A stretch of DNA of 64,000 bases from Pavona decussata (lineage: Eukaryota): NCBI GenBank assembly GCA_977016875.1, contig CDRNST010000196.1:1426001-1490000 (forward strand). The letters run 5' to 3'. The notes beneath the pieces were generated by a model, which saw nothing but the letters and a program-made list of their open reading frames with translations, was not told where the DNA came from and ran no database searches. This document shows, one piece after another, positions 11,401 to 63,143 of this stretch; the stretch's first letter is position 1, and each line of letters begins with the position of its first letter. The translations under genes and the position numbers were made by a program.

Positions 11401-11459
11401 GCGCCATCTATTGCTGCTTCCTCTTTATTTCTAAAAATATTGTAGCAATTGTAACAGGG

Positions 11460-40114: not shown

Positions 40115-41029
40115 ATGGCTGAAGCAGAACTAATCCTTAGTTTGACCACCATTCCATTTCTTGTCGTTGGGTTTATTGGAAATGTGTTGGTTATTCGAAT
40201 CGTGCACAAAACACGAGACATGCACACGCCGACAAACTACTTGTTAGCAAACATGGCTGTTAGCGATGTCATCACCATCTTTTTGGTTCCAGCATCCAAA
40301 TTTGCTAATCATCTTGAATATCAAAGTGATGGATTTAGAACTTTCATCTGCAAGACATTTGGGCTTATTGCAATCTGTGTTACAGTTTCTTCCATTACTC
40401 TTACTGTGCTGGCAGTAGAAAGATATCACGCGTTACTGAAACCTTTCCGAACAGGCTTGCGACTGAAAGAAGACAACATTACATACGCCATTGTCTTCAT
40501 TTGGATCTCAAGTGTTATCATAGGTTTCCCAGCGTTTATTTTTAAAGACTGGAGTGAGAGATATTCCACATGTGTTGGTCCATGGACTTTACACATGAAT
40601 CAGGCGGACAAAGTTTATCTGTTAATAATAGCCACATTTATTTATATCAAGCTCGTGGCGGTGTCTTTTTGTTACGGAGCCTTAATCAGGGGAATTTATT
40701 TTACCAAAACAGTTTGCGCAGGAAGAGCTGGAGAAAGGAATGAGGAAAGAACGCAACTTGTTGTCACATTTATTCTAGCGACTGTTGGATTTTTTATTGG
40801 TAATGCACCAGTTGTAGTTTTCTTTACAATTTTAGCCTCGCAAAGTGATGAACTCTTGGACTCGAAGTTGAACTCTGTTCTTCTTTCCGTGTTTGTTGTG
40901 GTGCTTCATTGTAGTTTATGCTTCAACCCGATTTTGTACGCTTTTCGTAGTACAAACTTTAAGGTAGGTTTCAAACGCATGTTACCGTGTCGTGAGCCGA
41001 TGCCATCAAATGAGATTGAATTGAGGTAA
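40115..41029 (+). CDS. Intronless class A (rhodopsin-like) GPCR, peptide-receptor-like, 304 aa
   Basis: Seven hydrophobic segments; GN (TM1), NMAVSD (TM2), ERY (TM3), W..FP (TM4), CY (TM5), NPILY (TM7); Cys in TM3 and ECL2. The start is placed at ATG 40115 by alignment with the paralog, not at the ORF-track GTG at 40043. Confidence 0.93.
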   Translation: MAEAELILSLTTIPFLVVGFIGNVLVIRIVHKTRDMHTPTNYLLANMAVSDVITIFLVPASKFANHLEYQSDGFRTFICKTFGLIAICVTVSSITLTVLAVERYHALLKPFRTGLRLKEDNITYAIVFIWISSVIIGFPAFIFKDWSERYSTCVGPWTLHMNQADKVYLLIIATFIYIKLVAVSFCYGALIRGIYFTKTVCAGRAGERNEERTQLVVTFILATVGFFIGNAPVVVFFTILASQSDELLDSKLNSVLLSVFVVVLHCSLCFNPILYAFRSTNFKVGFKRMLPCREPMPSNEIELR

Positions 41030-41098
41030 TTATTCATTTTTATTTCTGTTTTAAGTTCATTTGGCTCACGGTTGTTCCAAGAATGTTTATTCTAAAAC

Positions 41099-41186
41099 AA
41101 GGTTGGACACCTTACAATGTTTACACAATGCTAAGTTTGAAAAAAAGATTTTTCTGTTGTGTAAACATAATAAGGTGTCCAACCTT
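41099..41186. repeat. Small palindromic element just 3' of the GPCR stop codon
   Basis: AAGGTTGGACACCTTACAATGTTTACACAA pairs with TTGTGTAAACATAATAAGGTGTCCAACCTT. Confidence 0.75.
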
Positions 41187-44100
41187 TAGCTCACGCAGAC
41201 ATTGTTGACTCCGCCGAATATCCAATATCCACGCTTTATGTAGGCCCCAATGATTTGCGCCTTTAATCTTCTGAGAGAATTAGCTGTTAGCGGCGAGTTA
41301 TAAGTTGATAATATTGGCTAAATGTTCGAATTAGAGGGTAGGGTGAATTTATGCCGGATAGCCTGGAAAATTAGGAGACGCAAAGAGGAAGGCAAATAAG
41401 TCATCATCAGTCACAATAACGAGGTGGTTAGTTTAGCGATTAGTTTTAAATAACAAAATTGTTCGGGCGATAAACAAAAACAAAAACAAAGCAAAAAAAT
41501 CGCCAGAACAAGAATGAAAATGTAATGCGGGCTACACTTTATGAATCGAGTTTTCGTTACGGATTACCGTACATGGCTATACATCGTTAATCTTTATTGA
41601 TAACGCATTGTAATGCATGGACTAGATGTCAGCCTTTAAATTTGTCCTGAATAATAATCTCTTTTTTTTTCTCAATAAAATTCCCAATCTAAACGCTCAA
41701 AGTGATTGTGAAAGAAGGATAAATTCATGATGTTTCATTAATTATTAACAGGATACTCGAAATTCAGCACTAATCCCTTGTGAGTTCAAGTTAACGGGCT
41801 TCTTCTGTATTTCGACGGAACCGGAATCCTAATATGACTAATTCAAAAAGATCACATCCGGTTGTACTGCTACGTAACATAACGACATGACCTATTTTAG
41901 ACAGGTTAAACTTGTTATGATGTAATTTTCGTCTCCGGACGATTTCATCGTATGGTTGTACAAAAATGAATAAAATAGATACCAGGTAACTGCAGGGCTT
42001 CCACTTCTTGCAACAAATTTGTATGTGGGTCATTTTTCCGCGTTCGGTTTTTCGGCTCCTCTTCGTGTAAAAAGCAGACCAGATAAAACACGCGCTGCGA
42101 GTTTTTTGAAAGGCTTTAAAAACTGATTTCCTGGAAAAGCGCGTGTCAAGAGAAATCATAACAATGATGCTTTTGTGAGCTTTGGAAATTAGCATACGAG
42201 AAAAACATTAAACACCGCATACTGTTAAAGAGGGGGAGGTTTTCTCGGGTTTCAAAACCACTGCACGAGATGTTTTATCGACCATTCGATAGATCAATGT
42301 GTTTATGAATTATTAATGAGTTTTTGAAAGTAACATAAAACGAAGAAAAATAAAAAGTATAAACTCCTGTAAAACAATAGTGTGCGGGACAACAAAAGAT
42401 AAAAACAAAGGAAAATATCACCGACTGAGGAATTTTATCCGGCGAACAAGACTTCTAACACATTTTAGTGTTAATGACCTGTTAAAAGGGCTTTTTAATT
42501 TAGATAATGTACATTTGTTTTTCTGCCAAGTTTCTAAGTAACGCATTTCTTCTCGTAGAATTCTATTCTTCAATCATTGCAATAGAATTGCAAAGCAGCT
42601 GTTATTTCATACAATTCAGTGAAAACACTGAGTAATATTTTACAATTATAGACAAAAACAGGGAAAAAAGAGCATGGATAGTGTAAAATATTCAAGGTTG
42701 GTGTAGCAATGAACGTTACAAATGCAAACGCATCACAATTTTCTTTTCGACAAAAACAGATATAATGTTTCGGCTAATTATTGTGAGTTGGGTTTGTTGT
42801 CATGCTCTTCAGTTGATTAATATTTCTCATTCATTATTCTTGAGGTCGTCTTTGTAGACGATAGGCATGGATTACAAGAATAGCTTTGTTGGCGTCTTAT
42901 AAATCAAAGTATCGGTAAGCTCATGGCGACGGAATTGAAGCAGCGACGGAGGACACAGCGAAGAGTCAAGGTATAAAAGCATTTATAATTTTTATTCACA
43001 ATGCCTTTATAATTTTAGTGAAATCCTTTAAGCAGATTACAACTGTGAAATTATCCATTTCCAGAACGCAGTCAATTCCTCCGCTATAAAGACTTTTATG
43101 ATTTAACAATGCCTCATCTCAATTGACACAATGATTTAAAAAATCAGGTAGAGAAAAACGGCGTGATATCAAGTGAAGGCAACCTCCACTGAAAACGTTT
43201 CCCGTTTAATCAATTTTAGGTTTGTTCTTTATTCATCCACTGCGGCTGCTGAATGTACTTCATGCCTCTTTTAATGCGTGTCCTAGTATGCGCAGGCTAC
43301 GAAGAGAACTTGATGAGTCCCTTAATTTACACCTGCCAAGAAAAGAGTTTTATTATAATTTTAACATGCAACTGACAATGTAGACTGAATGCTCAAAACG
43401 ATGTAGTGATATAAATTGAATGCTGATCGTGGTCAATAAAAAGCTTCACATCAAAAATATAATACATTTTTGACATTGAGAACTTCTGCCAATAGATTAG
43501 TTTTGAACTAGACCCAGATGCTTACAAACTAGAGGACGGAGTTGAGGCTTAAAGGTTATTAAACCAAACGAATATGTTATTGCAGTACTTTCTCTCAGCT
43601 TTTCCTCTGTCTGTTTGTTTTCTGGCCATCATGGGGCTCTGTCATTAGAATCTAATTTAAAGTGTGGAAAATCGAATAGGACGAGAAACATTTCTTATCA
43701 TCAAATAAAATAGTGTTGATTTCGTCTGCAAATAATATAATCTATGTATGAGACCATTTTTGTAGCTAGTTGATGTTTCTAAGTATGCGTAGTATAAGAT
43801 GCATTATGTGGACAAGGTAAATAAAGAGAGCTACCTCATAAGCTTCCAATGCTTCCGTAATCATAGGCCGGGCTGGCAGGACATTTTAACCACGTCTCAA
43901 ATCCTTTTGATCTTAGAAAAGAGAATTATATTAGTTAAAGCTGATCTAAGTGCAACTTTAAGCCATAGTGATTCATTAATCGATTAAACACAGGCCTGGC
44001 GTTTTGCGAGGATGTTTCATGTGATTTGAGAGGGCTTGTGTGTCTGCCATTTGCAATCAACAGCTGGCGGCATATGTGCATGTGTTTTGCGAAAATCCTA

Positions 44101-44519
44101 CTAAGAAATACTTGGAGCTGTGCTGTTCTGTGAGTCATCGCAAGTCTTAATTCGACCTTATATATTGTTTCAACGGGATGGAAGTCCATTGGCTTAAAAT
44201 TGAAAACTGTGGAGGTATTCTGACCCTTAAAGGCAGTGAAGGTAAAGTCGCAAAAGAGCCACAAATAGCACACACGGCTGAAGATTAACCCGGTTTCGGT
44301 AACATGCAGCAACTTGGTGAATTTGTTTCAACCTCAGCTGGATGGGATGCTGGTCGATCCCAGGGTTAACCCCAGCAGTATGTTGACAACGCCCCTAGTC
44401 TCACTGTAGGGGGTTTTTTACGTTTCGGTCGTCAATGGAACTCTAATGTCATTTTAAGACAACCATTGAACATCTGCTGTACAGTGTACTGGCTGGGTGT
44501 GTGGAATCTAGACAATAAC

Positions 44520-47305
44520 CTACCTTCCGCTTGAGTCGTTAAAGTTCTTACAAATCGTTCTACAGTCTTGAATGTCCTGTCGCACGTGCTCTAGTAAAGC
44601 CTCGTGTTGTTTGTTCAACTTCTGAAAGAACGTTAATCTCTTCTTTATTCTGTTTGTTGTGTCCTCGTTGATGCAGTTTCTGAAGGCGTCCAGCCGGAGT
44701 TTTTCTTTTTCTATCAACATGTCTTGTTGTCTCTGTGCCTCGCGAAACTTGCTGAGCAAGCCAAGAATTCTTTCGCGGCATTCCGTTCCCTCGTCGCCAG
44801 TTTTGGCCACCTTTTTCCAGTTATGTACCTCTGTTCTGATTTGCACCTGAAAAGATTTCATTTCAATGAGTATTTTTAAAAACTTGTTAAACTTTGCTGA
44901 ACAAAAGTGAGCAAATCTAAGAAGTTTCGGAGGTGGAGGCATCAGTTGTTTTACAATTAGACTGAGAGGTCGGTCGAATCAAGCTTTCTTCTCTCGACGC
45001 CAATTCTCGGGGAGAATTACCACGGGTGAATAAGAGCTCTACTCTAAAACTACAAAGAGACTAAATATATACGGAAGAAAGTGCTGGTGAGTTCATCAAA
45101 TTAAGAGCAAGGATATTTAACGGAGGGGGAAACGTGTGTTGGTAAATGTTGAGCAATAATTTGTAACCTGTAAGATCTTCTTCTGTTCTTGATAATGCTG
45201 GCAGAGTTTAGTAAAGTGTTCAAACTTGTAGTCTGGAGGAGACTGAAGGGTTACTTCTACCTGTTAATAAAAGCAACATCACAAAACTTGAAGCTAAACG
45301 AGAAGGATGGAAATTTCGCCTCTTCCGTTTCATTTTCTTAGTAGATCCTTTGAACTGGTTCTTTGATATTGCTGTCTCTCATGCTTAACATAAGATATCA
45401 ATACTAAGATGTACAAACTCGCATGGAATCACCTTTCTTGCGCTGTACACTTCAGTCAAGCCACATGGTAAGCGACTCTTTCGTTACCAAGAATTATGTT
45501 TTATTCAGTCTCATGTTTAGAGAAAAGTGGACTGCAAGCAACATGGGCACAATATCATCGTTGGATCTGACCCAGTTCTTATATAAGAACAAGCAATCTA
45601 TTGGTACGTTTACAATATTCAAATTCTACTGGGTATTCGTGATGAGCTATGCCAAGACATAATGACTAACTTACCTTCAAGAGCGTTATTTAATTACAAT
45701 GAAACCAACAAAAACATTACGACACACTTGTTGTAAATGTCCACATGACAGTGCTGTCTTCTACCTGTCAAGTTGTCTTTGGACAGTCAGTCAGTAACAG
45801 AAAATACACAAACATGTCTGAAACACACAACGTCAATACAGACGGTAAATACATTGAACACGGGCATTAAAGACATAAAGAACTAACAAGATACATCAAT
45901 GCAAAGACAAAGAATGTTCAAAAATTCTATTTTAAAGGTGACTCACGTCAAGTTTGTTCAAAGTGGACTGAAAGGAAACGGTACAAATGATAAAATTGGT
46001 CTGTAATGATTGCGTAAGGGGACGACAAAATATAAGAGCAAACCAGCAAGGCATGTATCAAGGCATGAAAAGAAATTAAACATAAAAAATGCACCACGAA
46101 ACGCTAAAAAAACGTGCTGCGCAAATACTGAGAAACAGGAAATGCACATAATTGCTAACGTGTATAGCAATGAAATATAATACATTTTGTNNNNNNNNNN
46201 NNNNNNNNNNNNNNNNNNNNNNNNNNNNNNNNNNNNNNNNNNNNNNNNNNNNNNNNNNNNNNNNNNNNNNNNNNNNNNNNNNNNNNNNNNNNNNNNNNNN
46301 NNNNNNNNNNNNNNNNNNNNNNNNNNNCCCCGTCCACACTAATGCATTTCGTTTGAAAACGCACACTTTTTGATAGTTCTTTTTTTACTTTTGAAAACGG
46401 TGACGCAAATAGCGTCACACGACATTGGTTCCAGTCCACATGCTAAAACATGCGTAACCCCAGGTCCCAGTCGTTTACATCTTTTTCGGGCGTTCTGGCG
46501 TGGACAGATGAGAACAACACGTGTGGCCGAAAACATTTTGGTGCATTTTCAGACTTTTAAAAACGCATTAGTGTGAACGGGGCCCGGTGTTGAGTTCATA
46601 GAAACGTTCAGTTTATATGACAAATTTCGTAAGTGCTTATTATACAAAAGTAAAATAAAGGCGTTCTTTACTGCTTAACAGATAATTAAAAGTAAAATAA
46701 AATAAAATAAAAGTTAAATGGAGCTATCAATTTGTAACGGGTGGGAATTAAATTAACATTTTACCGATATAACAAAGTCACCTGATGAATAAAAATATCG
46801 TTTTTTAATCTCACAGTTTAAACCATGAGTTCTCAACAGTTTTATTTCAAATGAGTCTTTCAATGCTCAGTTGTCAAAAAAAGCTTTTACGACTTTCTGT
46901 GCTAACGTGAAAGAAGGCCTTATTGCTTTTCAATTTGCATGACCCTGAAATACCTTTATTAGGCCATATTCCCGTCGTGTCAGATAAATTCAACTTACAA
47001 ATAAGAATCGGAACTACACGTCGTTCGAGTTTTTGGTAGTTAAGCTCTCAAGGCATACGATACCACTTGTTTTTAGTGTGGGTTTTACTTTGATAGACGG
47101 CGATTATTTCAAGTTTTCTTTGTAATGGGCTATGATAAAAACATCGGACTTGTCTGACGTACGACGTGTATTCTCTTCGCTTTCCTTTTAAAAAGGAATA
47201 CGTTTATGAAGTTGAAAACATACAAACCGTGTTGTTGTTTTGTTTGGCAGGTGGTAGTGCGGGTGGTTTATTGGCCAAGCCCATGGAGCTCATTGTTGTT
47301 CCCAT
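44520..47305 (-). CDS. Uncharacterised small helical protein X (about 165 aa) with a predicted N-myristoylation start MGTTMS. Coding exons 47305-47228, 45260-45168, 44846-44520
   Basis: Minus strand: acceptor TTTTCTTTTCCAG|47350, ATG 47305, donor ACG|GTTTGT; 93-nt exon AACAG|GTAGAA...TTACAG|GTTACA; acceptor CTTTTCAG|GTGCAA at 44846; all phase 0. An upstream UTR donor AAG|GTAAGA lies near 48158. Supported by homology to X'. The 3' end could instead splice at AG|GTAGGT next to the stop. Confidence 0.72.
46191..46327. other. Assembly gap (137 N) inside the first coding intron of gene X
   Basis: Run of N. Confidence 1.
46328..46584. mobile_element. MITE with (GG)CCCCGTCCACACTAATGC inverted termini; left tip lost in the gap
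   Basis: CCCCGTCCACACTAATGCATTT ... AAACGCATTAGTGTGAACGGGGCC. Confidence 0.75.
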
Positions 47306-49613
47306 GACAACTGGGCTTGGTGTAAGAAAAGCAATTTCCACGAATTAATTCTGGAAAAGAAAAGGAGAAAAAAAATAGAAATTTTGTGCACAATAATTTT
47401 CCAGCAAAGCATATCTTTGCAGTCTTAGATAATACACTGAATTTATTTTCGTTAGAGATTCCAGCTATCTGAAATGTGCCAATAAAGCCAAGAAGATACC
47501 TGCGTTCGAATCAATAGATTGTTAATGCTTGCTTGTTAATTCCAAGGATTATTGACTATCTCGTATATCTTGTTTGATGAAAATCCTTAATCTGTTTTCC
47601 TATTGGTGTTAAAATTTCTGCCTTTTTCCACTCAAGAAAAATATGTTAAGACCTGTTTGAAACACCGGTAGTTATCATTAGCCTCTAGCCAAAATACGGA
47701 ATTCAAGATATTTCCGAATTCTTGCGGCCAAAGAGTCCAGATTATAGGAATCATTTAGGGATTTCTCATGTGCTTATTATTCTTCTCGTCACGGAATGTA
47801 AATCGGTTGGAGTTTGCAAGATCCATAAAAAAATCCCATTCCTCGGAATTAGAAGATTAAAAATGTAGCTGAATGTCATTTTATATTTGCTTGAAGCAAA
47901 ACAGGAACAGCTGTTAAGAGTTCGCTTCTATGAATTCGAGTAATGTTTGTTTGTTTTGAGCGTACGCTTGCTATGACATTTGCAAATGTGCAAATTGCTG
48001 TAGCTAAATCTTTAGCTGAAAGTACCGCGATGGGTGCAAAACTGGGAGTTATGTTTTCTACTAAGAAGCACTTAAGAGTCTGAATTTGAAAATGCAAGCT
48101 ATACATATAGCTCAGCCCTACCTGAGCGCGGCTTGGACTAGATTAGATAACGTCTTACCTTGTGATAATGTTTATCGTTGAGGTTATATCTCACTACAAA
48201 CTCTCTGTGAGCAAAACACCAGAAGTTAGAACTTGAAAGTTGAAGTGAGGGAAGTTGTGCGATGCTAATTGACCAGCAAAATATTTCCTCTGCCCGTCCG
48301 GTTTGCGACTAAGTGTGCACTTATTTACCGATGGATTTCAGTTGAGTAACTGTTTTGGTGCGAGGCTTGGAACTGAATTGTATCGACTTGTTAAAGGCCT
48401 GATGATGTGAAGTCATCGTGTTCAACGTGCGTGGTGTTGACTGCACGTTTAATACGCCTTACAGTACCAGCCCTATGACACCACATGGGCACAAGTAAAT
48501 GATGCTCTTTAAGCGCTGAAGTTTATTTGGAAGGGCGCGTCCTCAGTTGTCAGCGGCAACACTTCCTAAGGGTGTGGTTTTTGGCGATCATTCAGCAGTT
48601 GTTTCTACTGTGTTTCGTTTAAAAGAAAAAAATTATTGTAAGATTCACACGAAAAGCTTGCATTTGTCGAATCTTTTAAGGTTTTATTTGCATTGCATAT
48701 CCCTCAACATGCTATCAGGTTCTGACAAACTCCAGCTAAAAGAATTTTCCTCCCATAAGTTAAAACACCCTGCAAAATTCTACTGGGATCAACTTGTAAT
48801 TTCTCCTTACTTTTTTAATATTAATGTTTTATAAGTAAAAATATTCAGATTAATAAACATACACCGTATGAAGAATGAAGACTTTGATCTTAAAAATGCA
48901 GTGAAAGGCTTTAACTTGATTCCTTATAAAATTATTTTGCATGGTATCTTTCCTTTTATCAATGTTAGAAAGTAGTGGTACCTAAGTTCTTGGCAGCTCG
49001 AAATGTTGAACAAAATGCAAATATTGCCACCTGTTGACAAGGTACTCTGATGCAAGTCGTCAGAGAAAATCAAAAGGAAAACAGACTTAACGGTGTGGGA
49101 CGTAATTATGCCAGTCCAATTATTTTAAAGGAATACCTATGTTGCTGTAGAGGTCTTGGTTAATTATTCCAAATATTCGAAATAAACAACATGGCGGTTG
49201 AATAAAGGTGGCCGTTAGGGTTTAGGTTCCGTCATGCATATCCGAAGCAACAGTAGATGTGTATCTTTTCTAAACCTCCTCACCCTCACTCCAATGAGCT
49301 CTCCGACTCACATTATTGCAAGTTTATGAGTCAATAGACTGTTTGCGCCTAGACTTTCGTGTACATGTTATCATGATAGCCGCATCGTCTTCAATTTTAC
49401 TGGAGAGGAAACGATGATATAGGAGTTAAAATAAATCTCAGCATTTAACAATTTTTAAATTACTTACAAACAACAAAACTAGTTTTTAGGAATTCTTTTG
49501 CGCGTCTTGCACCATTAGTTGAGACCATCTCTCTCACCCATAGCCTGTCTTGTACGCAACCTAAACATCTGACGCAAAACCATAATCTTTCCTGCGCTAT
49601 AGGGAGGATACAA

Positions 49614-49790
49614 AATAGGCCATTTCCGAGTTGCTGTGAACCTCACTATGAAAGCGAGGCTAAGTGCGAAACTTCTCAAATGAAAATTAGTTTTGTTTGC
49701 ATATGAATGAAAACTAATTTTCATAACAAAAACTTTGCACTTAGCCTCGCTTTCATAATGAGGTTCAAAGCAACTCGGAAATGGTCTATT
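49614..49790. mobile_element. Palindromic MITE, copy 2 (opposite orientation to 30088-30263)
   Basis: AATAGGCCATTTCCGAGTTGC ... GCAACTCGGAAATGGTCTATT. Highly similar to copy 1; the spurious ORFs over both copies share [14 protein letters not shown]...[18 protein letters not shown]. Confidence 0.88.
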
Positions 49791-51452
49791 GATCTTTTCG
49801 CCGGACTGGAGATACATTGGGAACCCAGTGCGTTTTTATGCATGCTGTTTGTTTGTTTGGGTCAGCTATCACCAGTTCATAAGCGTTTTGGCGCGAAAGG
49901 AGTACTGGAAAGACATTTTTAACAGTCAAGTATACACGTTATCTGTTCTCAGCAATCAGCACTACCCTCCCTCCTCACCCAAGAAACACCAAGGATGCGT
50001 TTTTTGGGACATATTCCGGAAAAACATATTCGAAAATCAGAACATCTCGAAAAATGTAACATATTTTTTATCTAAAACATTAATGAGAATTCCATTATTT
50101 TACTTTGGCTATTCGAATGTTTTTCGTTACTCGGGCAACAGATACAGCATAGATTTTTTCGTGTATTCCTTCTTCAGAATACACAGAATGTTTCCCCTAA
50201 AAAACGCGCCCCTAGCCACTAACCTGTGTTAAAAATAACTGGTGGAAACATTTGCGTAAGGAGGCCCGTGAGGATTGTGGCATGATTGTAGTTTTTTTGA
50301 AATAAACACAGACTGGACTGAAGAGTCTGTTCACGAATGTGAGGAGACTATAAATATCGTTACAACTCTGGTTTGGGACATTACTTTGAGGCTAATTCTG
50401 ACGTGATTGCTGTGCAACATCTCAACGAAACTAAAATAACCTCAAAGTTTCATTTTTGGACTATCTGAAAAATTAAGATTGTGATCTACCATTTTTCCAG
50501 AATTATTACATAAATTTATCCAGTAGATCTTACCCTCTATCAAATTTGTTGTTGTTGTTTACAGAAATTTTTACTGGATGACTTTCCCCCAAACTTTTCT
50601 GCAGACCAAATGTTGCGTTTACACATGCAAAAAGAAAAAAAAATCAGCATGGATTCGAAAAAGTTTCCAAATTGCAGCATTACTGTTTCCTGCAGGAAAA
50701 TTCGAATGATTTCACTTAGACTTAGTATCTAGCCGCGTGCATCTCCATGCATCCAGGCTGTCCCACCTCATGGCTTGGCGCATGCGCTGGTCTCTTTTTC
50801 CACGACTTAATTACAATTATAATGTTAGAAATTGTTAAAAATTGTTAGCGCAGAAAATAAAACCATCATTTGCATACGTAGTTAGACAAAAGACGTTTCT
50901 ATTTTCTGTGTTTTGATTGTACTGTGTTAAAATCCAAACTAGTCTGTATGAAACAACATTAACCACTTGTCTTTTCTTGGTTATAATGCTCAATTCCAAA
51001 CTTTTTAAGAGCAAACAAACAAACACCTTTCGATTAAAACTTGCCTGTCCACCATCTTTGGGACTCTTTGAATATAAATATTTATGGTTTTCCGGCAAAT
51101 TAATACACCAAAATTTCACCGGCTCGTTTCTGATTGGTCAACGCATAACCGCTATTATTATTTTTGGTTAATAAAAGAGAACGTTTTTAGCATTTTGAAA
51201 AGTAAATTGAGCAAGTTTTTGAAAATAATTTAAATTTTAAACCTTTGTTAAATTTTAATTTTGTTATGTTTTAGTATTTTATGCAGTTTTAAAATAGCAT
51301 ATATTGATATTATTTTTTCTAGTTCATGCACGGAAAACTCCAGGAGATTCCTTTAACGTTTTTACATAATTAAAACTTGTTGTTGTTATTGAAAGCTCAC
51401 GCACACTGTTCTTCTCTTGCGTTTGATGTTTGTCGGTCGAATTCACGCTCAC

Positions 51453-51459
51453 TATAAAA
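51453..51459 (+). promoter_or_regulatory. Candidate TATA box for gene X'
   Basis: TATAAAA about 85 bp upstream of a possible UTR-exon donor near 51537 and about 430 bp upstream of the ATG. Confidence 0.3.
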
Positions 51460-51886
51460 AATTCGGGAATCTAATTTCTGTCTTCACATTTGGTTTCACT
51501 CTCGGATCCAGTTCACCCTGTTCGATCTCCAAGACGGTAGTGCTCGCTACCCTCCCCTCCCTCTAAAAAAGGGCATTTCACACTGTGAAGCGAATATTGC
51601 TTCGCTATGCCTAAACAACGGTTAATCTCATCTTTGTCACCAGAATGAAGTGTAAAAAGGAGCTTATGAAATCAGGATTAGCAATGTGATATATTCTGTA
51701 TCCGATTCAAAAAAGCATGGTAGGTGAATGGTAGTTTAATATGACTTAGATAATGCGCAGAACTATTTAAAAGCCTTATGCTTTATCAGCTGCGCCGAAT
51801 GGACGTCAAACTACATTTTCGTTTCCGATCATTCAGGTCCTTTGAGTTGACAAGTTTTGATTGCGGATATTAGAATCAGTTATAAG

Positions 51887-54800
51887 ATGGGAATAGCTCT
51901 TTCAGTTCTCCGGAGACTGTCTATACTTGCTCTTTCAACGGAAGTACAATCAGATTCCCTACCGGAGCCAACTGATTCAAAGGTGACAACAAATTTTTGA
52001 ATCATTGATAACTGAAGGGTATATAATTTCCTCGCACTTACTGGCTTTACCGAGAAAGTTTGATTGAAGCTTTTCCTAACAGTTCACTACAAATATTGAG
52101 TCATGGAATGCGCGGCTTACATGAAATCCAAACATGTGATCAATGGAAACTAAGCTACAGTGTATATTACCCACGGCGTTATTGGTTTTTCATTTTTGCT
52201 ATGGGTAATTTACAAAAAGAATTGAAATATTAGGATCTTCTTATCTGAAAACGATGGTAAGAATTTCAACTGAAAACCATAATTTCAAAAGTCGATCACG
52301 ACGGCTTAGTTCGGAGATAAAATCATTTCGCTTGAATTTCTTGGGCCTCTTACTTCTATTAACTGATCCTTCAAGTGAATTTTTCATGAAGGCATTTCAG
52401 CATTTTAGCATAGAATTAACATGGATAGCTCGTGTAAGCAGTTGTTCCGTGTTGGGGCCATAATCGACAGTAAAACTCTCCTCTCGCACAAAGACATTTT
52501 AACTCATAAGTGAGAAAAGTAAGCTGTGAAATGAGTTTGTTAGCAGTAAAATATATGAGAAAATGTTTTGTTATAATTAAATATCTCTAAACCATTTCTT
52601 TATTGCAGTGAAAAACTGAAAAACAGAGCCCTCACTTCGGATCACATTGAACATTCTTTGCAGTGATCTTCGTTTTATCATTATATGTCAAATCCTCATG
52701 CCAGATTTCACTTCCACATCCTACAATGTACAATCTTATAATTCTTTACAAAAATACAGTACGTTTCTAAAGCCCGACTTCGATATTTTATTATTGTTTG
52801 AAATATTTATTATTTTACCTCAAATTTACGAAGTCAAAACGTAGATAATTTTCTTATTACCTAGTTTGCACGTCCAATCGAAAAACTTAACTTAATTGGT
52901 ACTTAGATTTAGTAATTAAATTTCTCGGTTTTCGCATAATCAATTAACATAAGATCGGATCGGAAACGTTTGAGTGCTTAAAAAAAATTCTATAACCGAT
53001 TGAATAAAGGATTTAGATCCTACGAGTCCCGCTAATATGTTTTATTTATTGTTTTTAGTGCGCCGGTAAGTCATGATACTGGCCGAATGTTTAGTTTTTC
53101 TTTGAGACATCACTGGCTTTTTTCTTTGAGACATCAGTGCTTTATGATTGTAGTTTAAAACGCCAGATATCACCTGCAATATAGACAATATTTAAGCGAT
53201 AAGAGTTTTACATTGCACTGAACAAGCTAAGCTTCTTTCTTTGTAAAGATAAGAGAGGATTTCTTAGCATCTTACAATTAACCCAACGATGTGAATCAAA
53301 AGAGATTGAGTTTCGTCGGACTGCCATGAAAAAGATTTTGATTTTTTTCAGCGATCCGTTTTTTAAACACTGTTCTATTTTGACTACTGTGTACACTCAA
53401 CGACATTCTCAATTCGGATTGGTCGAGAGCGGTACAATTAATCCCAAATAGTACTTCGTCGGAGTACCTATTACGTTGCCTTGACATCGGTGCACAAGCA
53501 CGTCAAGAAAGATGGCCGACAGTCGATTTGCAGTTTGCAAGGAATCGAAATGTAGAACAACTAAGCAACGATGACACAAAAAAAGAACACAAACCTTTGT
53601 TCAACGATTGGTGTAGCTGGGATGAAGAGCGCAATATCAATGGTAACCTTGAAAAAAAAAAAAAAAAAATCGGCCGCAGCTTTCGTAATTTTGTTGAATG
53701 GCAAGATCTTCTCGTACAATTCGTAAACAAAGAATTTAACGTATTAAAATTGGTACTCGTTATGTTTTGAAAGTTCTCAAAATTCTCAAAGTTTTCAAAA
53801 CATTACTCGGAAGCCTGGAGTGTCAATTGATTGCATATCTTGGACAATTTGTCCTATCCTACCAAAGTTTTCGTTGCTTCTGCAACCAGTGATGCATTGA
53901 AACTCTTGGGTTATTATGAGCCAGGGGGATAATGCATTTGAAGCTATAGTAAATAAAGTCCATCTAATTGCTTTTTGTTGAACTGTCTTAACTACATTAC
54001 TTTATCACAGTAATTGAAAACTTAATTCAGTATTTAAGTCAGGTAAGGCAAAACAGCTGACACCGATAGAAAGGGTATCTTGAAATTGAAAAAAAATGCC
54101 AAATTTGAGAGTCCTGTGTTTAGAAATAGCGAATATTTAGTTTCGTCAAGTCTGACAATTTTTTTTGACATTTGTATGGAATCGGGCAAGTTTTGCCCGT
54201 CATCATGCAAACTTTTGCAAAATATCATTGAATTTATGGAACTATATCTTTACTATATTAAAAGACAAGACTCAAATTTGTTCATTTAAGAGTTAAGATT
54301 TAAGATGCGTTTCCGAAAGTGTCAATGGTGTTTCGTTTCCTGGCCTACATCAAAATTAAATTTTAAATTACTGTGATGAGAACAATTTCACTAGTTCGTT
54401 GAATTTAGTAATTTCTTTCCTACAGGATGTGGATGCTCCCCGCTGTTGTAATGACGTCAAGTGCACGAGCGCTGCAAAAACTGCGAAAGAGCTGTTAACT
54501 AACATGGAGCAAATTGAAACACAACTCCACAATGAAGTCATTCTGTGGAAATTACGGTTCATACGGGGAATCTGCACCGAGGAAAGCCGACGCAACTTCT
54601 ATGAGCTTTTGGGACAGTTTACAACCTTTAATGGAATGCTTGACACAGTTATTGAATGCGAAACAAAGTATTGCAATGCGACTGGAGCAAAACACAACGA
54701 AGATGAAGTAACCGCAACAACAAGTGAAGCTAGCGAGCCCAGGAACGTATCTCTGAGTCAAGGAAAAGCAAAACAACAGGGTGAAACGGCAGACATCGAA

Positions 54801-55094
54801 GCTGGACAGTTCAAGAGTACGGCAAATGCCGAGGCAAAAGCTTTAGCAAAAAGAAAAAGATTTTTTGCCAAAGTTCAAGAACGGAACGTGAAACTGTTGT
54901 CAGTTGTTCTAAGCAAGGTAGATGAGTGTCGTTCGATGGTTGAAATCACCTGCAATGGACAGGAATTGTCAGAAAACTTTACGGGAACGTTGGAAGGCAA
55001 TGGGGTTAAATCTTTGAGTATTTTGGAGGAGTCGATAGAGGAACAACAACCCGAATTCCGGAAGAAGGAGACAGTAGTATTGTTAACTGAATGA
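51887..55094 (+). CDS. Uncharacterised helical protein X' (about 254 aa), paralog of X, with a predicted N-myristoylation start MGIALS. Coding exons 51887-51982, 54426-55094
   Basis: Acceptor ATTCAG|51837, ATG 51887 (MGIALSVLRRLS...EPTDSK), donor AAG|GTGACA at 51983 (phase 0), acceptor TTCTTTCCTACAG|54426 in frame, stop TGA 55092-55094. Exon 2 is well supported by homology to X; exon 1 is less certain. Confidence 0.72.
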
Positions 55095-56649
55095 ATTGAT
55101 TAACTTGGGCCATCGCGCAGAATGCCCGTCGTTCGCGGGCAGTCGAGTAAAAATTATAGGTCTGTGACTGTGTGCATTCAGCCTGAACAAGGCGCCTATG
55201 ACTGATCAACGAAAACACGGCTTTTATCCACAACGGAACAGGAGCGGAACAAAAATAAATAGCTGCCTCGCGAGGTCTATGTATTGTTGATCCTTTTATG
55301 TCACAATTTCGCTCGTTTAAGTTCTAAATAGGAGCTTAATCGCTTTTCATTTTTGCTTAGCGTAAGATTTAACATGCTGAGGTTTTCGAGAAGTGCTTTT
55401 GAGTATTGTGGTAATTCACTGCTGGCAAAAGAAACCATTGGCGATAGGGGAAATGCATTTCGATTAAATAAAGTTCAACATCTTGCTCTCGAAACATTCC
55501 TGATTCATGCAAGCATTTTCTTGAGCCCTGGTACCTAGTGTTTTCTTTGAATCCGATGTGTAGACGGTAAGCGCGTTGGGGTATATCCTCAAACGAGGCC
55601 TAGTGACAAACCTTTGATCTAAACTTGTCGAACTACATTTTTCTTATATACGTCACGCATAACATTTCAGAGAAACTCAAACAACTAAATTAATTTTGCT
55701 CGGTCTTTAAACATTGGAGTGAATTAGCAGCTGTTCTTAAAGCCAGAATAAATATTCAAAAGATAAGACAATTTGGATATGATGAAATTAAAAGTTCAAC
55801 ATTACTGATCCGGCTGATGAAAGTTTTGCACTGCTGTAAACTTATCTAAAAACAATAATCACAAAACTGTGTACTGAGGATGGCACTGGGTTAACAAGAC
55901 TAGCTCAATAAATATAAAATTTTCAAACGCATAGGTCTGGTTAATTTTTGAGTTTATTATGCTTATGCTAATCCAATGAACTGATCTTCTTTTTCCCTTT
56001 TATTATGAATCGAAGCAGATTTATTGTGCTGCGTGTCTGAACTCAAGTGGATTTACCTCGGTGTGAAAACCTGTGAAGTTTTTCTTTGTTTTATTACTAT
56101 TATGTTTGTTCTACTGTTGTTTTTACTTTTTTGTTTTCTTTGTTCCACGTCACTCGTGAACGTAAGAGGTTTTTACACTGAGGGTGAGCCGCTCAAGTTT
56201 ACAACGGTATTACGAGATTCCTTAAGCTTATTTCCCCTTCGTAACTGTGGAAAGTTGCTAGTTGCGGGTGGGGAGGGGAGTGACATTTTTGAGAGGTTTT
56301 GAGAGACATTTTTCAGTCCACATTGCAAATATCACGTTAAAAGTGGGTAGTATATATTTGAATTTGTCACTAACTAACGAGAAAAAGATGAGTCTGGCTT
56401 GGTGGCGACATCATACCATATCAGTGGTAAGAGCATTTGAACGTGGCTTTTCATTGGCTGAATAACACAATCATTTAAAGTTGTTTTGTGAACTGAAACC
56501 AAACATAAGTACTGAGGTCTAGACATTTATCCGAAGCAATAAGCAAGGCCCTTGCTTCGAAACGTTTCGAACGATAAATAACATTTCATTGCATCTCAGA
56601 CTATGTGCGTGCTTACGCAGTAACACACAAAGTATAGTTTTTACTCAAC

Positions 56650-56830
56650 TCTTACCTCGATTTGTCGCTTGTATATTGCAGCTGACGATGTAGATCGCTT
56701 TCTTCGCCACTCGACATGCCATTATTGCTATCATCTTTTTGTTCTAACAGCTCAAGAACCCTCTCTCCGCTAAGGGCAACCGTTCGCGACCGCTTCACGG
56801 CCGACGCTATCTTGAGTCGAAAGAACAGTG
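56650..56830 (-). mobile_element. Probable decayed transposase 5' end (acidic N-terminus reminiscent of piggyBac)
   Basis: Minus-strand reading KIASAVKRSRTVALSGERVLELLEQKDD...GMSSGEESDL ends at a GTAAGA donor. AAGATAGCG looks like a mutated AAGATGGCG start. No catalytic domain is present in the window. Confidence 0.3.
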
Positions 56831-57816
56831 ACTTGGAGAATACGGCGTGTAGGCCACATTCAAGTGTTTTACGCTTTCTACCAAATCTTGTGGCGATCGC
56901 ATGTAACGCAAATTTTGGCAAATGTTTTCGTTATCAGTCTTCAAGTCCAGATGTAAGGTCTGGACAGAAATAAGTTAAAAGTAATAATTAAGACTTTCCG
57001 AGATACTTTTCTTCATCTGAATGTCAAAGTCTTATTTTTAGTCATTTGTCTTTCATCCGCCATCTTGTATTTGGCACGTCATTTGGTCATATACTAATTG
57101 TTTGGACAATCGCGACACATATAAATGATACAAACAAAAAAGACAAAAAACGCGACTGAAAACTTAATTCCGAGTAATTATTTTAGTTCATAACTGTTAA
57201 AAAGACAAAGATCAAATCTGATTGGTTTAAAGTAATGGCACTTATAAACAATTTATTGAAAACAGGGAGAGAATAATAGTAAGAATACATTAATAGCAAT
57301 CTTAATCAGGCTTTCAGCTGAAAGAAATTTGAGATGTACGCTTTTCCATGGGCCTGGCTCAAATCAGCATCTCAAAGATCAATATTTGAAAAACAATTAT
57401 TTCCTCCTGGCAAAGTGTGTGGAAGCCCACGCCACATGCCCATATGGCTAAAATCTTTATTTCTCTTTTTTTTTCTTTACAGGTGACATAGACTGAAGCA
57501 ATGCTGTGACCTCATTCGGGGTCAAAATGGACTTAATAATAAAAACTGTACATATGTATATGATTCTGTGACATACTACAATTCTTGCAAAGACAAGCAC
57601 TTCATGTAGCTTCAGTTCAAGGAATAACAATATTATATGATTGCATTCTTTATCATTCAGTTTCACTAATTTAAATGAATTGCACGAAAAAAAAAAACAC
57701 ACCATTTTCGAGGTGTTTGGAGATATGATGAAACTCTTTCTTGAATGTTTGATATTTCTTCTTCTAAAGTGTCTTCGTGAGCTACATTATTATAAAACCA
57801 AGAAAACAAAGAATAG

Positions 57817-58728
57817 TTATCTCAACTGAATCTCATTAGACGGTGTAGGTTCACGACATAACATGCGTTTGAAACCTAACCGAAAGTTTGTACTACGAAA
57901 AGCGTATAAAATCGGGTTGAAGCATAAACTACAACGAAACGCTACAACAAACACGGAGTGAAGAACAGAAGTCAACTTCAAATTCAAGTGTTTATCACTT
58001 CGTGAGGCTAACACTGTGTAGAAAACTAAACCCGGTGCATTACCAATAAAAAAGCCGACACTCGCCATGATAAATGTGACAACAAGTTGCGTTCTTTCCG
58101 CATTTCTTTCTCCAGCTCTCCCTGCGCAAACTGTTTTGGTAAAATAAATTCCCCTGATCAAGGCTCCGTAACAATAAAACAAGACCACTAGCTTAGAATA
58201 ATTAAGTATAGCTATTATTAACAGATAAACTTTGTCCGCCTGATTCATGTGTAAAGTCCATGGACCAACACATGTGGAATATCTCTCACTCCAGTCTTTG
58301 AAAATAAACTCTGGAAAACATATGATAACACTTGAGATCCAAATGAAGACAATGGCGTATGTAATGTTGTCTTCTTTCAGTCGCAATCCTGTTCGGAAAG
58401 GTTTCATTAAGGCGTGATATCTTTCTACTGCCAGCACAGTAAGAGTAATGGAAGAAACCGTAACACAGATTGCAATAAGCCCAAACGACTTGCAGATGAA
58501 AGTTCTAAATCCATCACTTTGAAGTTCAAGGTGATCAGCAAATTTGTATATTGGAACCAAAAGAATAGTGATGACATCGCTAACAGCCATGTTTGCTAAC
58601 AGGTAGTTTGTTGGAGTGTGCATGTCTCGTGTTTTGTGAACGATTTGAATAACCAACACATTTCCAATAAATCCAACGACAAGAAATGGAATGGTCGTCA
58701 AACTAAGGACTAATTCTGGTTCAGCCAT
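57817..58728 (-). CDS. Intronless class A GPCR, 303 aa, inverted paralog of 40115-41029
   Basis: Same 7TM motifs (GN, NMAVSD, ERY, NPILY). About 42 differences over 304 aligned positions by manual count (about 86% identity). Confidence 0.93.
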   Translation of the reverse strand: MAEPELVLSLTTIPFLVVGFIGNVLVIQIVHKTRDMHTPTNYLLANMAVSDVITILLVPIYKFADHLELQSDGFRTFICKSFGLIAICVTVSSITLTVLAVERYHALMKPFRTGLRLKEDNITYAIVFIWISSVIICFPEFIFKDWSERYSTCVGPWTLHMNQADKVYLLIIAILNYSKLVVLFYCYGALIRGIYFTKTVCAGRAGERNAERTQLVVTFIMASVGFFIGNAPGLVFYTVLASRSDKHLNLKLTSVLHSVFVVAFRCSLCFNPILYAFRSTNFRLGFKRMLCREPTPSNEIQLR

Positions 58729-59278
58729 GTTGTTCGCGAGCCAATAAATATATTTGCAGTTCCTAGCTTTTCAATCGATGGATAAAGTTTAAAGACTGAT
58801 CGCTTGGACCATCTGTTTTCACAAATTTGCATGGAGCAACTGCGCATCTGTTGTTTATACACCGTACATTAATTAAGGTTGTAAGTTGTTCCTTACTGGG
58901 TGAAAGCGCGTCATTTTAAGGCAATTTAGTCAACAAAGAAAGCTCACTTGCTGTTTCTCAATCGAAAGGAGATTTTGAAAAAAGAAGATGAAAATGACTT
59001 AAAAATAAGCTGGAGTGCATCATGTGTAGAAGGCATAGATGGGTTTTACTGATAAGTGTTATGGGCCGTATATGTTTACTGTTAAGTGTTATAAATTCTG
59101 AAATTTAAATGTTGAGTGTTTTACATGAAATTACAGTTAACTGTTATAATGCATTCTAGATACTAAATAAAATAAATTAAAAAAATTAAAAATACAGAAG
59201 TGATGTTACTGATGAAATTTACGTTAACATGCGAAAATGGGCCAATTTTTCTTAATGAGAAAAAAAAAATCGTTGAGA

Positions 59279-60136
59279 TATCTCATCGATGTCGACGGAG
59301 TGTCGACCGAGTGTCGAGTGATGCGCGACCGTCACTTGGTCGGCACTTTATCGAACTTCTGTGAGTATCGATCATCACGACGGTGGAGAGTATAGGTTGG
59401 AAGTGGACCGATATGTCGGTCGATACTGCACCGAAACTTTACCGACGCCTTGTTGTACTTAGTCGTCAATTTGCCAATACTAAGCCGGTGGTTGGTTGCT
59501 AGTTGGCCAACACTCGGCAGATACTCCAAAATGTTGGTTATGAGTGCAATTGGGAATATTTGAGAGCAAGACAAGAAAATATAAAGATGTGGTAATACCT
59601 GACGTGTGTTCCTTAAAGAATTAATGGCGTATAAATAGCCTTTAATGACCCTCTAGAACAAACGAATGAAATAAAATAAAGTAAAAGAGAAATGAACTGT
59701 TCTCCTCCTGGGTCTCGTTTAAAAATACGGATGTTTCCACTAAAAAAAAAAAAAATAAAAAAATAAAAAAAAAATTTCCACTATGATTTTAACCGAGACT
59801 TAGCTGAAACATTGCACACAGTTACCTAGTAAGGCATACTTCATCAACAATTTCATCGCTACTTTACCGATATTCTAACAATATTCTGCTGATACTTTAC
59901 CGATGCTGTGGCGAACGAACACTAGGCCGATGTCTCGACCGACAGTCGACCGACAATTTGACCGCTTATAGGTCAATGCTCGACCAAGTCTCGACCGAGT
60001 CGCAGTCGAGACTCGGTCGCATGTCGGTCGACTCTCGCCCGAGTATCGATCGAGAGACGACCGACACTTTACCGTCAATCGACGACATGTGTCGGTCGAC
60101 ATGTCGACCGAAGGAGCTTATTGCACGTTTGATCCA
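59279..60136. repeat. Decayed repeat element rich in GTCGAC/TCGACCGA motifs
   Basis: Two CpG-rich blocks (59279-59520 and 59860-60120) of reiterated GTCGACCGA-like units around an AT-rich core. Confidence 0.55.
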
Positions 60137-61479
60137 ATAACCCTATGACCCGCTGATCCAAGGATCATCATTTCTCATCTCTTCATGAACCCAGGAGCTT
60201 TCCTGCTCGTTTCCTAAAGGTCTTCCATGTTGACTATTTCTGAGTTTGTTGGTTGCTCTGTCTGTGCAAGACTTAAGATTGTGTTTTTATTGTTTTGGTG
60301 CTCATTTTGAGGTGCAGCAGTCGAAATCAAGTTTTCAGAACTTATTTCCCTGTCAGAACTCAACGGAGGATATATGCGAACTGCAAACGCTTTCAAACTA
60401 TACTGAATTCTTTCCGAGGACTGAGATGCTTTTCAGGTATTTTATTGTATCATCTACAAGGATACGGATATCCTTACCACTATCACGGGGAATGAATTTT
60501 TTCGTCCACAAAATAGGTGACATGCGTTCTCTTATTCTTCCAACACAGCGCGTGTTTATATTCCAGAAAAGTCTTAATATCGCGGACTTTGCCGGTGCCC
60601 CGTCTACGTTTCATCGTTCAATTTCGCTGAGGAACGTCTGAGGGCACTATTTGTTCCTGACCATGATGAGGTAGAGTTAGGTACGTCCATTCAGCGTCCA
60701 TACATCTAATGTAGAGTTTAGTTCTCTAAAAATATCTCAAAAGTATACTGACAAAGGGGCTGGTACCTTGGGGATATATTCTCCGTATTTGACTTATAAG
60801 ACCGTTGAGGCTTAGACTGATTATGCCTGCATTGTTTTACAAAAATTTAACTTAACGAAGTACGTTTTCAACCTCAAATTGCTTAGTCTCTGGTCAAAAT
60901 TTCGAGTTTCAAGGGAAAAAAAGAGTGTATATTTTTATCATGTTTAGAACGGCAGGTGCCACTCCTCACACGATCTGGTGTAACATAAAAAACGCTGATG
61001 CAGTAGTCCAGCGCTCAATTTTGTATCTATTGAAACGGCGGGTGAGACGCCTCACACGGTCTTGTGTGAATATAAACGCTAATACAGCCAGCCAGCGCTT
61101 AACTTTGCTCGTAATGCCTGATGTGAATTCTTAATTTAGATCAAATTCTTTCGGCATACATTAAAACAGATTATCACACCTTTGTGGTTTTGAAAAGGAA
61201 TAATCACGTGCACGGTGCGCCCTCGATTAAGCTATTTCAGGAATGCTAGTAAAATCTACTTGCATTCAGTTCCTTCGCGGGGTGTTCTCTCATGTGCAAA
61301 CTGAAGGGAAGCAATTCCTCAGTGGCTACAAATCTTTAAGCCGGCATTGTTAACTCAGCTTCCTTCGTAAGCCCTTCAGCGTTTAAGTCAAGTGTTCTAG
61401 CCACACTTTTCCCTCTGGACATTTTTAGCATTACATAGACCCATGGCGAGTGCTTTGTTCGTCTCATAAATTGTTTTTT

Positions 61480-61758
61480 GCCCTTTGTTTTCATTACAAA
61501 GACAAGAACGAACACGTTCGTTCTTCTGATGCTTATGCTTATGTCGCAGTTTTCACCGAATGAGAGCGGGGACACAAGCACAAGGCAGTCAACCGTTTCG
61601 TCCGCCATCTTGCTTAACATCGAGGGGAGCTGGTATGGAGAACTCAGTCAAGAAATGGTTTTCTGCGCGTGCGTCTGTCCTTATGCTTCTGTACGTAGTG
61701 TTCTCATTTGCTTATCTTTATGCTTAAGCTTATGCTTATGTTCTAGTGAAAACCAGCC
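61480..61758. mobile_element. Partly decayed MITE with GCTTAT sub-terminal repeats
   Basis: Right end CTAGTGAAAACCAGCC|TTA; degenerate left end TTGTTTTCATTAC; repeated (TGCTTA)n units. Confidence 0.5.
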
Positions 61759-62075
61759 TTAACTTTCATCGAATTGCTGGAGAAAGAGACTGGTCTACTG
61801 ATAGAAGAACCACTGAAGGTGATCGACTGTACCTAAAGAACTGATTATGTTTACTTGGCAGTACTTCTGCTCGGTACTAGTGAATGTGTGCCGCTAGCAC
61901 TAAAGACACAAATGATAGAACAGAGAATTAACTTTGAAGAGTACTGTATTAAAGTGCTAAGTGTATCCATGTAATTCCTACTGGGCGTTAGCCCTAGTAA
62001 GGAAATAAGAGAACGCGCGCGCGAGGTACAGAAACTTGAATCTTTGACCTGGTCGTCCTTAGCTTAATCGACTAA

Positions 62076-62491
62076 GGGGCTGTTTACATGGAGGGAGGAA
62101 GATCCTGGCACTAGGAAAATCCGAGAAGGTGGAAAAACATTTCGTTTGATTTACATGCAGAAATTTCGGCCCAAGTGGTCACCAAGTGGAGAAGGAAAAG
62201 AAGAATAACTGTCGGCCTTGAGCAATTGAACGCCGGGTTGCCGCCATGTTTGTTCTTTTTGCCCCTAGTACTAGGATCTTCCGAGCGAAAGTAGTTTACA
62301 TGGTGCTAGGATCTTCCTAGTGCTAGGATCTTCCTATCTCTCAGCTAGGAAGTTCCTATCTCTAGGAAGATCCTAGGGCCAAGTACAACTTTTTGCATGT
62401 AAACTGAATAGAGAAAACATATGGCGCTAGGATGATCCGCCCTCTGGGTCTTCTGGTGCTAGGATCTTCCTCCTTTCATTTAAACAGTCCC
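62076..62491. mobile_element. PIF/Harbinger-type MITE with a TAA target-site duplication
   Basis: TAA|GGGGCTGTTTACATGGAGGGAGGAAGATCCTGGCAC ... GTGCTAGGATCTTCCTCCTTTCATTTAAACAGTCCC|TAA. Many internal CTAGGATCTTCC repeats. Confidence 0.85.
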
Positions 62492-63143
62492 TAACCCAAG
62501 ACTTGCTCCCGTCTTGCCTCGTAGCTGATAATGGTGGTAATTGCAACAATGTGAGCGTTAGACTTGCCTCAAGTCTTCTTCTTATGCGCCGAAAGATTGA
62601 CCGGCGAGCGACGCCGGGAAAACGGACTATGAGCAAGTCTATATGAATGTGAAAGGGACTAAATGTTGTGCTGCCAGCACTAATTGAGGACACAAATGAT
62701 GGATCGGAGAATAACCCCTGTAGTGCATGTTAAAGTGCTAAAGTGAACAAATGAAATTCATACTCCTTGAGCATTAACCCTAGTAAGGAAATGGGAGACG
62801 AGTGTGTTCGACTTGATTGTAATTGCGCAGTCAAGGGAGTTCGAAAATTTGACAATAACAATAACACTAAAAAAAAAAAAAAAATAGAATAAGCAAAAAA
62901 GAAACGAAAAAACATGAAGGAAAACTTACAAAATGTTGATTTCATATTGCTCAGTCAAAGTGACAAAGCTATATTCTTATCTTGTAACGAACAGGACTTC
63001 TCACCGTAAATAATATTGGTGCCTTAAGGCTAGTTTACAAGTACAGATTAATAGCACTGATTTGGTCCAATTTGACAAAGAAAATGAGTTAACGGACCAA
63101 AATGATCCCCATATACAAAAAGCTGTGGTAGTGCTACAGATGG

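Follow-up and report, generated by a model that had tools for sequence, protein, structure and literature searches.

We describe a 64-kb window (64,000 nucleotides; contig CDRNST010000196.1, positions 1,426,001 to 1,490,000) of the genome of the coral Pavona decussata, in which two related G protein-coupled receptor (GPCR) genes and two members of an uncharacterised protein family, here called X and X', lie in mirror image. GPCR1, on the forward strand, converges tail-to-tail on X, GPCR2, on the reverse strand, converges on X', and X and X' are transcribed divergently from the centre (Table 1). The initial annotation of the window placed all four genes at these positions and in these orientations, all of which were borne out. 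It read the arrangement either as an old inverted duplication of a receptor-plus-X unit, the receptors of which were later homogenised by gene conversion, or as an independent recent receptor duplication, and proposed X as a membrane-tethered partner of the receptors; taken as a whole, that interpretation is partly supported by the present analysis.

Table 1. Features of the mirror-image locus in window coordinates (a dot marks features without a strand).
Feature	Position	Strand	Basis or remark
GPCR1, intronless class A (rhodopsin-like) receptor, 304 aa	40115..41029	+	PF00001, 131 bits
GPCR2, intact 303-aa paralog of GPCR1	57817..58728	-	PF00001, 123 bits; 86% amino acid identity
Left copy of the 1.2-kb duplicated unit: GPCR1 with ~225 bp upstream and 40 bp downstream	39889..41070	+	blastn
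Right copy of the 1.2-kb duplicated unit (GPCR2)	57776..58988	-	blastn
Gene-conversion tract shared with GPCR2 (partner about 58211-58728)	40115..40632	+	most homogenised at 40336-40632
X exon 1, MGTTMSSMGLANKPPALPPAKQNNNT, candidate N-myristoylation start	47228..47305	-	tblastn to Actinostola P0050, residues 1-39
Assembly gap (N) in X intron 1	46191..46327	.	located by script, between exons 1 and 2
X exon 2, VEVTLQSPPDYKFEHFTKLCQHYQEQKKILQ	45168..45260	-	tblastn, 88-91% to P0037 and P0041; splice sites read directly
X exon 3, conserved helical core	44524..44846	-	ortholog alignment from VQIRTEV, just past acceptor tcttttcag
X exon 4, ending SKGFETWLKCPASPAYDYGSIGSL and stop	43836..43911	-	96% in tblastn with full-length orthologs; acceptor AG and stop read from the sequence
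X' exon 1, MGIALSVLRRLSILALSTEVQSDSLPEPTDSK	51887..51982	+	41% to Montipora-type N-terminus MGIVFSLFRRIL; 73% to relative; donor AAG/GTGACA
X' exon 2, 222 codons and stop	54426..55094	+	acceptor ttcctacag; coral homologs
Palindromic miniature inverted-repeat transposable element (MITE), 177 bp, at the apparent symmetry centre	49614..49790	.	81-nt arms, 88% complementary
Stretch without counterpart in the relative, holding GPCR2	55240..64000, on to ~66700 past the window	.	collinearity

Both receptors are intact, intronless open reading frames (ORFs). Each matches the profile PF00001 (7tm_1) over positions 1-260 of 260, at 131.4 bits for GPCR1 and 122.6 bits for GPCR2 against a cut-off of 30.5, and each translation carries VERYHAL, the E/DRY motif at the end of transmembrane segment (TM) 3, together with FNPILYAF, the NPxxY motif of TM7, as class A receptors do. 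The closest solved structures are those of peptide receptors (nociceptin, somatostatin, NPY2 and NK1), at an expectation value (E) of about 1e-20. The two proteins are identical at 262 of 304 residues, in line with the 86% first reported, and their genes differ by a synonymous divergence (dS) of 0.236, with a ratio of nonsynonymous to synonymous divergence (dN/dS) of 0.29.

The model of X had to be revised. What was first taken for the gene, a 140-aa ORF at 44520-44942, is composed of exon 3 (44846-44524) and 96 intronic bases; its first 32 codons are intron, only the exon 3 portion is real, and its apparent stop lies inside the exon 3 donor, AG/GTAGGT. From tblastn and directly read splice sites, X comprises four GT-AG exons (47305-43836) encoding 189 aa, which between them cover the entire length of full-length orthologs in tblastn. 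The assembly gap falls within intron 1 and so interrupts no reading frame; the sequences on either side of it match the contig of a close relative in unchanged order and orientation (window 45035-46190 and 46332-46660 against 10785-11956 and 12008-12346 of the relative). X' is a gene of two exons (51887-55094) with a predicted product of 254 aa, its putative splice read from the sequence and tblastn; exon 2 has 23 coral homologs, the named ones from Montipora, Oculina and Desmophyllum. For both genes the searches used exons, and full-length database orthologs stood for the whole proteins. Measured against the close relative, dN/dS is 0.10 for X, which is under strong constraint, and 0.29 for X', indicating weaker constraint than that on X. 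The first intron of each gene is in phase 0 and lies in a comparable place, and X has two further introns, after ..KKILQ (44846/45168) and within ..SSGR (43911/44524), without counterpart in X' (54426-55094); X' may derive from a partly processed copy or else have lost both introns. The RNA evidence consists of assembled contigs (5991 bases). Contigs of two probable RNA runs from the same organism cover 54509-55895, that is, X' exon 2 and ~0.8 kb of 3' untranslated region, the coverage beginning 3' of the exon 2 acceptor, and small exact contigs of a probable RNA run lie at 57821-57974 in GPCR2; these are compatible with transcription of both genes, level, strand and splicing not being thereby proven.

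The identity of X to X', first put at about 25%, is 26-27% by BLASTP. The homology that the original pairwise alignment indicated stands, although part of the stretch it aligned consists of intronic codons. In a profile-profile comparison of the two ortholog families with hhalign, X and X' match at 95.4% probability (E 1.8e-8) over 104 collinear columns with a score of 58.7, against 10-17.5 for the reversed and 20 column-shuffled controls, so that, judged by their profiles, the two are genuine distant paralogs. Full-length X orthologs measure 190-208 aa, the one from the anemone Actinostola being 62% identical. Among 1.84 billion representatives a profile search found just 28 X-family proteins, the named matches, all uncharacterised, coming from Nematostella, Xenia, Hydractinia and Hydra; with its presence in these genera and in Actinostola, X is pan-cnidarian, and the family appears to be limited to Cnidaria. 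No extra X or X' paralog was found in the P. decussata genome. Two read-assembly proteins, P0077 and P0078, are very divergent, with a long insert between two conserved blocks, and X' may predate stony corals because both carry the X'-like motif QLHNEV.W. In the older Nematostella model EDO47905 (P0060, 371 aa), some 200 unrelated residues are fused to the X core, and the exon encoding MG is missing, as is the C-terminal one with GFETWIKCP..GSIGSL; P0059 (191 aa) looks like the correct Nematostella form. The Nematostella X locus itself holds 14 kb of N.

The mirror layout is real, and its measurements are striking. The midpoint of the receptor stop codons, (41029+57817)/2 = 49423, lies 173 bp from that of the X and X' start codons, (47305+51887)/2 = 49596, as the near-coincident values of ~49420 and ~49600 first noticed had implied. 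GPCR1 and X are separated by 2.8 kb, and X' and GPCR2 by 2.7 kb; the latter figure was correct from the outset, and the former, originally 3.5 kb, shrinks once X exon 4 is counted. Such spacing, in combination with the mirrored orientation of true paralogs and with conversion demonstrable between the receptors, is what an old inverted duplication of a GPCR-plus-X unit at the origin of X' would offer in its favour, the receptors having since been kept alike by recurrent conversion and the mirrored partners lost or inverted elsewhere. We consider this history highly improbable, as the extent and age of the homology do not accord with it. The inverted DNA repeat is confined to the two copies of the 1.2-kb receptor unit (82.8% identity over 1231 columns by blastn), and a self-comparison of 36-64 kb detected no mirrored DNA besides it. 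Within the unit the coding sequences (CDS) are about 90% identical, and the flanks about 70-75% with indels; because the resulting ~25-30% divergence of alignable non-coding flanks resembles the dS of 0.236, a single young copy event is indicated. The homology of the receptor units is thereby limited to 1.2 kb at a dS of 0.24, and that of X and X' is recognisable only by profile comparison. The central palindrome had been a candidate hinge for the duplication and was rejected as such. It is an abundant young MITE, with 2087 first-look candidates genome-wide, and was recently active, to judge from the 95-98% identity of its copies; a second copy lies within the window at about 30028-30335, and none occupies the orthologous site of the close relative.

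Synteny speaks against an old mirrored unit in the same sense. In the close relative (contigs L006 and L009), where X and X' are 95% and 85% identical to ours at the amino acid level, collinearity with the window extends from 36.0 to 55.2 kb and takes in a GPCR1 ortholog that converges on X, and GPCR2 is absent from the syntenic place. The symmetry is lost there as well: the gap between X and the receptor is 1.4 kb, and a 9.6-kb insertion (16164-25732 of the merged contig, reverse-complemented L009 followed by L006) occupies the spacer between X and X', which measures ~14 kb between start codons in the relative compared with 4.6 kb here. A tight bidirectional promoter shared by X and X' is disfavoured on account of the relative's long spacer. 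In a further coral (coral A; X' 59% identical) a VWA gene is followed by 7.4 kb without a receptor, by the divergent X and X', and then by a receptor on the same strand. In another (coral B; X' 66%) a same-strand receptor lies 2 kb downstream of X' and a second begins ~10 kb downstream, and in Desmophyllum dynamin comes after the divergent pair, and no receptor lies within 10 kb of X'. At least four stony-coral lineages retain X and X' head-to-head; the mirrored four-gene order is absent in coral A, coral B and Desmophyllum, as it is in the close relative. The notion of an old inverted duplication of the whole unit is accordingly not supported, since X and X' predate the stony-coral radiation and the receptors are young.

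The region that distinguishes the two species begins just beyond X'. The 11.5 kb from 55240 to ~66700, ending past the window, corresponds to 2.75 kb in the relative, with collinearity returning at ~66705, at the next receptor on the same strand. Most of this stretch consists of single-copy sequence, interrupted by small repeats at ~56.5-57.2 kb and ~62.07-62.5 kb, and the idea of a large mobile element carrying GPCR2 is not supported by such a composition. Of these repeats, the first (56518-57170) is about 650 bp long with 72-88% identity, and the second (62070-62495) about 425 bp long, with inverted ends of ~90% and many copies. Short, very deep contigs of RNA libraries at 56.0-57.1 kb probably derive from such repeats elsewhere. 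As for the receptors that the relative retains, its GPCR1 ortholog (L009:12640-13518) lacks ~16 codons of the TM2 region, including a conserved SD, and its next receptor (L006:16112-17036) is either split or cut short at 200 aa; these could be pseudogenes or errors of assembly, and the relative's remaining receptors look decayed.

The receptors themselves belong to a larger array. Six further copies of the family lie on the same contig within 70 kb, the nearest 5.6 kb beyond GPCR2 and just past the window, and more arrays are found on contigs C72 and C25. In a protein tree, GPCR1 and GPCR2 nest among the members of the adjacent array (C196), a position at odds with an origin alongside X'. Other recent pairs within the arrays differ by a dS of 0.05-0.20, and several are younger than GPCR1 and GPCR2. 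Two receptor fragments on the flanks of the live receptors, one within the window (38866-39129, reverse strand; TM4-5, 40-47% identity) and one past it (L012:2036-2374, equivalent to position 66036-66374; TM1-3, 38-59% identity), are relics of dead copies, typical of birth-and-death arrays. Among coral-amplified orthogroups the rhodopsin-like receptor domain is the commonest, the amplification being tandem and genus-specific (Noel et al., 2023, Genome Biol 24:123, PMC10236652), and the arrays on C196, C72 and C25 fit the families described in that study, with intronless class A genes in tandem, very recent duplicates and pseudogene relics. GPCR1 and GPCR2 differ from those families in being inverted and 17 kb apart, with two unrelated genes between them, rather than head-to-tail neighbours, and in carrying a partial conversion tract that can be dated. 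The independent recent receptor duplication that the initial annotation offered as its second option is the reading backed by repeat extent, dS, array membership and synteny.

Evidence for conversion between the receptors comes from their mosaic phylogeny. An abrupt change in site patterns marks CDS nt 518 (Fisher p 2e-6; permutation 0/2000). Over CDS nt 1-518, GPCR1 and GPCR2 are sisters with support of 96/98, the approximately unbiased (AU) test rejecting the alternatives, and in columns 231-530 they differ by 3.4%, compared with 12-13% from the GPCR1 ortholog of the relative. For the 3' part the tree joins GPCR1 to that ortholog (support 91/92), and over the last 400 nt GPCR1 differs by 14.3% from GPCR2 as against 9.4% from the relative. 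At the protein level, the branching order of GPCR1, GPCR2 and the ortholog of the relative is almost unresolved. Interlocus, or ectopic, gene conversion between inverted paralogs is a general phenomenon, and the present case resembles it in its mosaic tree and in a sharp breakpoint at which the grouping passes from paralogs to orthologs; it differs in that the tract is short (~0.3-0.5 kb), with no long palindrome and an arm homology of just 1.2 kb. Conversion did take place, as first proposed; it reached only part of each gene, the 5' ~520 nt, in a pair that is young, and does not amount to the long-term homogenisation of an old one.

On these sequence comparisons, the receptor duplication would be about 1.6 times as old as the split from the close relative, with the X'-side copy lost from the relative afterwards. 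We also weighed a simpler order, in which GPCR2 was inserted after the split, nothing was lost in the relative, and the 3' discordance reflects rate noise or faster evolution of GPCR2. The absence from the relative of the entire 11.5-kb stretch that holds GPCR2 would suit this order, as would the whole-gene dS between the receptors, which at 0.236 is slightly under the ortholog dS between window and relative (0.25-0.34), and the 3' topology, which is non-significant by the AU test. It appears rather unlikely to us in view of the highly significant shift in site patterns, the greater 3' distance of GPCR1 from GPCR2 than from the relative's gene, and the mostly single-copy nature of the window-only stretch, which is not one mobile element.

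Taken together, we consider it probable that the mirror combines two duplications that are far apart in age, and we see nothing to suggest that a receptor and X were ever copied as one unit. In the older event, the pan-cnidarian X would have been duplicated head-to-head before stony corals diversified, yielding a fast-evolving X', and the divergent pair would have been inherited thereafter. In the younger, a tandem array of intronless class A receptors, starting beside X' and subject to constant birth-and-death, would have supplied one member that was copied as an inverted unit of ~1.2 kb; receptor copies flank X and X' on either side because that copy was inverted. This duplication may have slightly preceded the split from the close relative, in which the X'-side receptor would later have been lost, and a subsequent interlocus conversion would have homogenised the 5' ~520 nt of both receptors. 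That the spacings are nearly equal and the midpoints almost coincide is due to chance. Several points weigh against this account. The alternative topologies for the 3' partition are not rejected (AU p about 0.10), so that the duplication may have come after speciation instead of before it, and repeated conversion could in principle mask an older age of the receptors. The close relative and corals A and B are each represented by a single contig of an ENA assembly, with flanks examined as far as 10 kb, and misassembly or a heterozygous deletion could mimic the loss of GPCR2. Further, a receptor array lies beside X' in four lineages (P. decussata, the close relative, and corals A and B), an adjacency that we read as inherited synteny and that could instead reflect constraint.

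The possibility that X and X' are partners of their neighbours was raised with the first description of the locus, in which X was called membrane-tethered. Neither X nor X' has a transmembrane segment (top 19-residue Kyte-Doolittle mean 1.26, compared with 2.41 for GPCR1), and tethering is plausible solely through N-myristoylation. Every full-length X-family member begins with MG, a start kept in the Xenia, Hydractinia, Hydra and Nematostella orthologs, and the N-termini MGTTMS (window), MGTSTS (Xenia), MGASFG (Hydractinia) and MGATLI (Hydra), like the MGIALS, MGIVFS and MGIVLS of X' (MGI[AV][LF]S), combine Gly2 with a small residue or Ser/Thr near position 6, as N-myristoylation sequences do, and are conserved in orthologs; X is probably N-myristoylated. 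AlphaFold2 predicts, for the X family, 45 disordered residues followed by a two-helix hairpin (H48-84 and H90-174), with a predicted local distance difference test score (pLDDT) of 80-90 in the core and a mean of 68. A Pfam search of X and X' assigned no family, the sole match of BORC type being BORCS7 at E 0.39, far below the cut-off. Foldseek comparison of X with the PDB found no relative (best E 0.27, generic helical hairpins), a sequence-profile search of the PDB gave only E above 1, and ESM Atlas features for X offered nothing usable. Our best guess is that X is a lipid-anchored helical adaptor.

In favour of X and X' being lipid-anchored accessory or adaptor partners of the neighbouring receptors, with the linkage held by selection, one may cite the conservation of Gly2 across Cnidaria, which suggests membrane anchoring, the abutment of the array on X' in four coral lineages, and the intact 312-codon class A receptor (L011:7011-7946, forward strand) that lies 2 kb upstream of X, and on the same strand, in Actinostola, which has X only. 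That last adjacency was rejected as conserved linkage: the Actinostola receptor belongs to another clade, its best matches in the P. decussata genome being on C239 at 39%. X is, moreover, far older and more conserved than the lineage-specific receptor clade, no receptor lies beside X in coral A or within 10 kb of X' in Desmophyllum, and X has no similarity to any known accessory family. Chance adjacency to receptors should be common, as the genome holds thousands of class A candidates. We regard a partnership with these receptors as extremely unlikely and do not retain it, given that X homologs elsewhere are unlinked to this receptor clade and that the close relative lacks the second copy.

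Known systems offer two points of reference. RAMP, MRAP and RTP/REEP are transmembrane accessory proteins of GPCRs. X and X' share their small size; they lack, however, a hydrophobic segment, a family profile match in Pfam and any match in the PDB or by fold, and their linkage to the present receptor clade is not conserved. BORCS5 (myrlysin) and LAMTOR1 are small N-myristoylated helical adaptors, to which X bears a functional analogy in its ~190 aa, its conserved MG start, and a disordered N-terminal third followed by long helices. They differ from X in showing no detectable sequence or profile similarity to it, and in that the X family is apparently restricted to Cnidaria. A bolder conjecture, to which we attach very little credence, is that X and X' are cnidarian-specific adaptors, helical hairpins with a lipid anchor, which from the inner face of the membrane would act on the signalling of the adjacent array, their adjacency being kept by shared regulation; if true, this would constitute an undescribed receptor-adaptor neighbourhood.

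Elsewhere in the window, two very long open frames on the forward strand (2-4357 and 11397-17651) show pronounced GC and AT skew, are 23% identical to each other over 690 residues, and encode repeat-rich proteins of coiled-coil type.

The locus amounts to an old pair of paralogs flanked by the two copies of an unexceptional birth-and-death receptor duplication, and is not a receptor-plus-partner module. It carries a caution, in that a striking mirror symmetry can come from two unrelated duplications with a transposon by chance at the centre. At the same time, it provides a clean and datable case of birth, loss and partial conversion within the tandem receptor arrays that dominate gene-family expansion in corals. 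Its lasting interest may lie with the X family, which has neither a Pfam family nor a structural relative, and which is small, strongly conserved and apparently confined to Cnidaria, with a conserved start of myristoylation type and, in stony corals, a head-to-head paralog.

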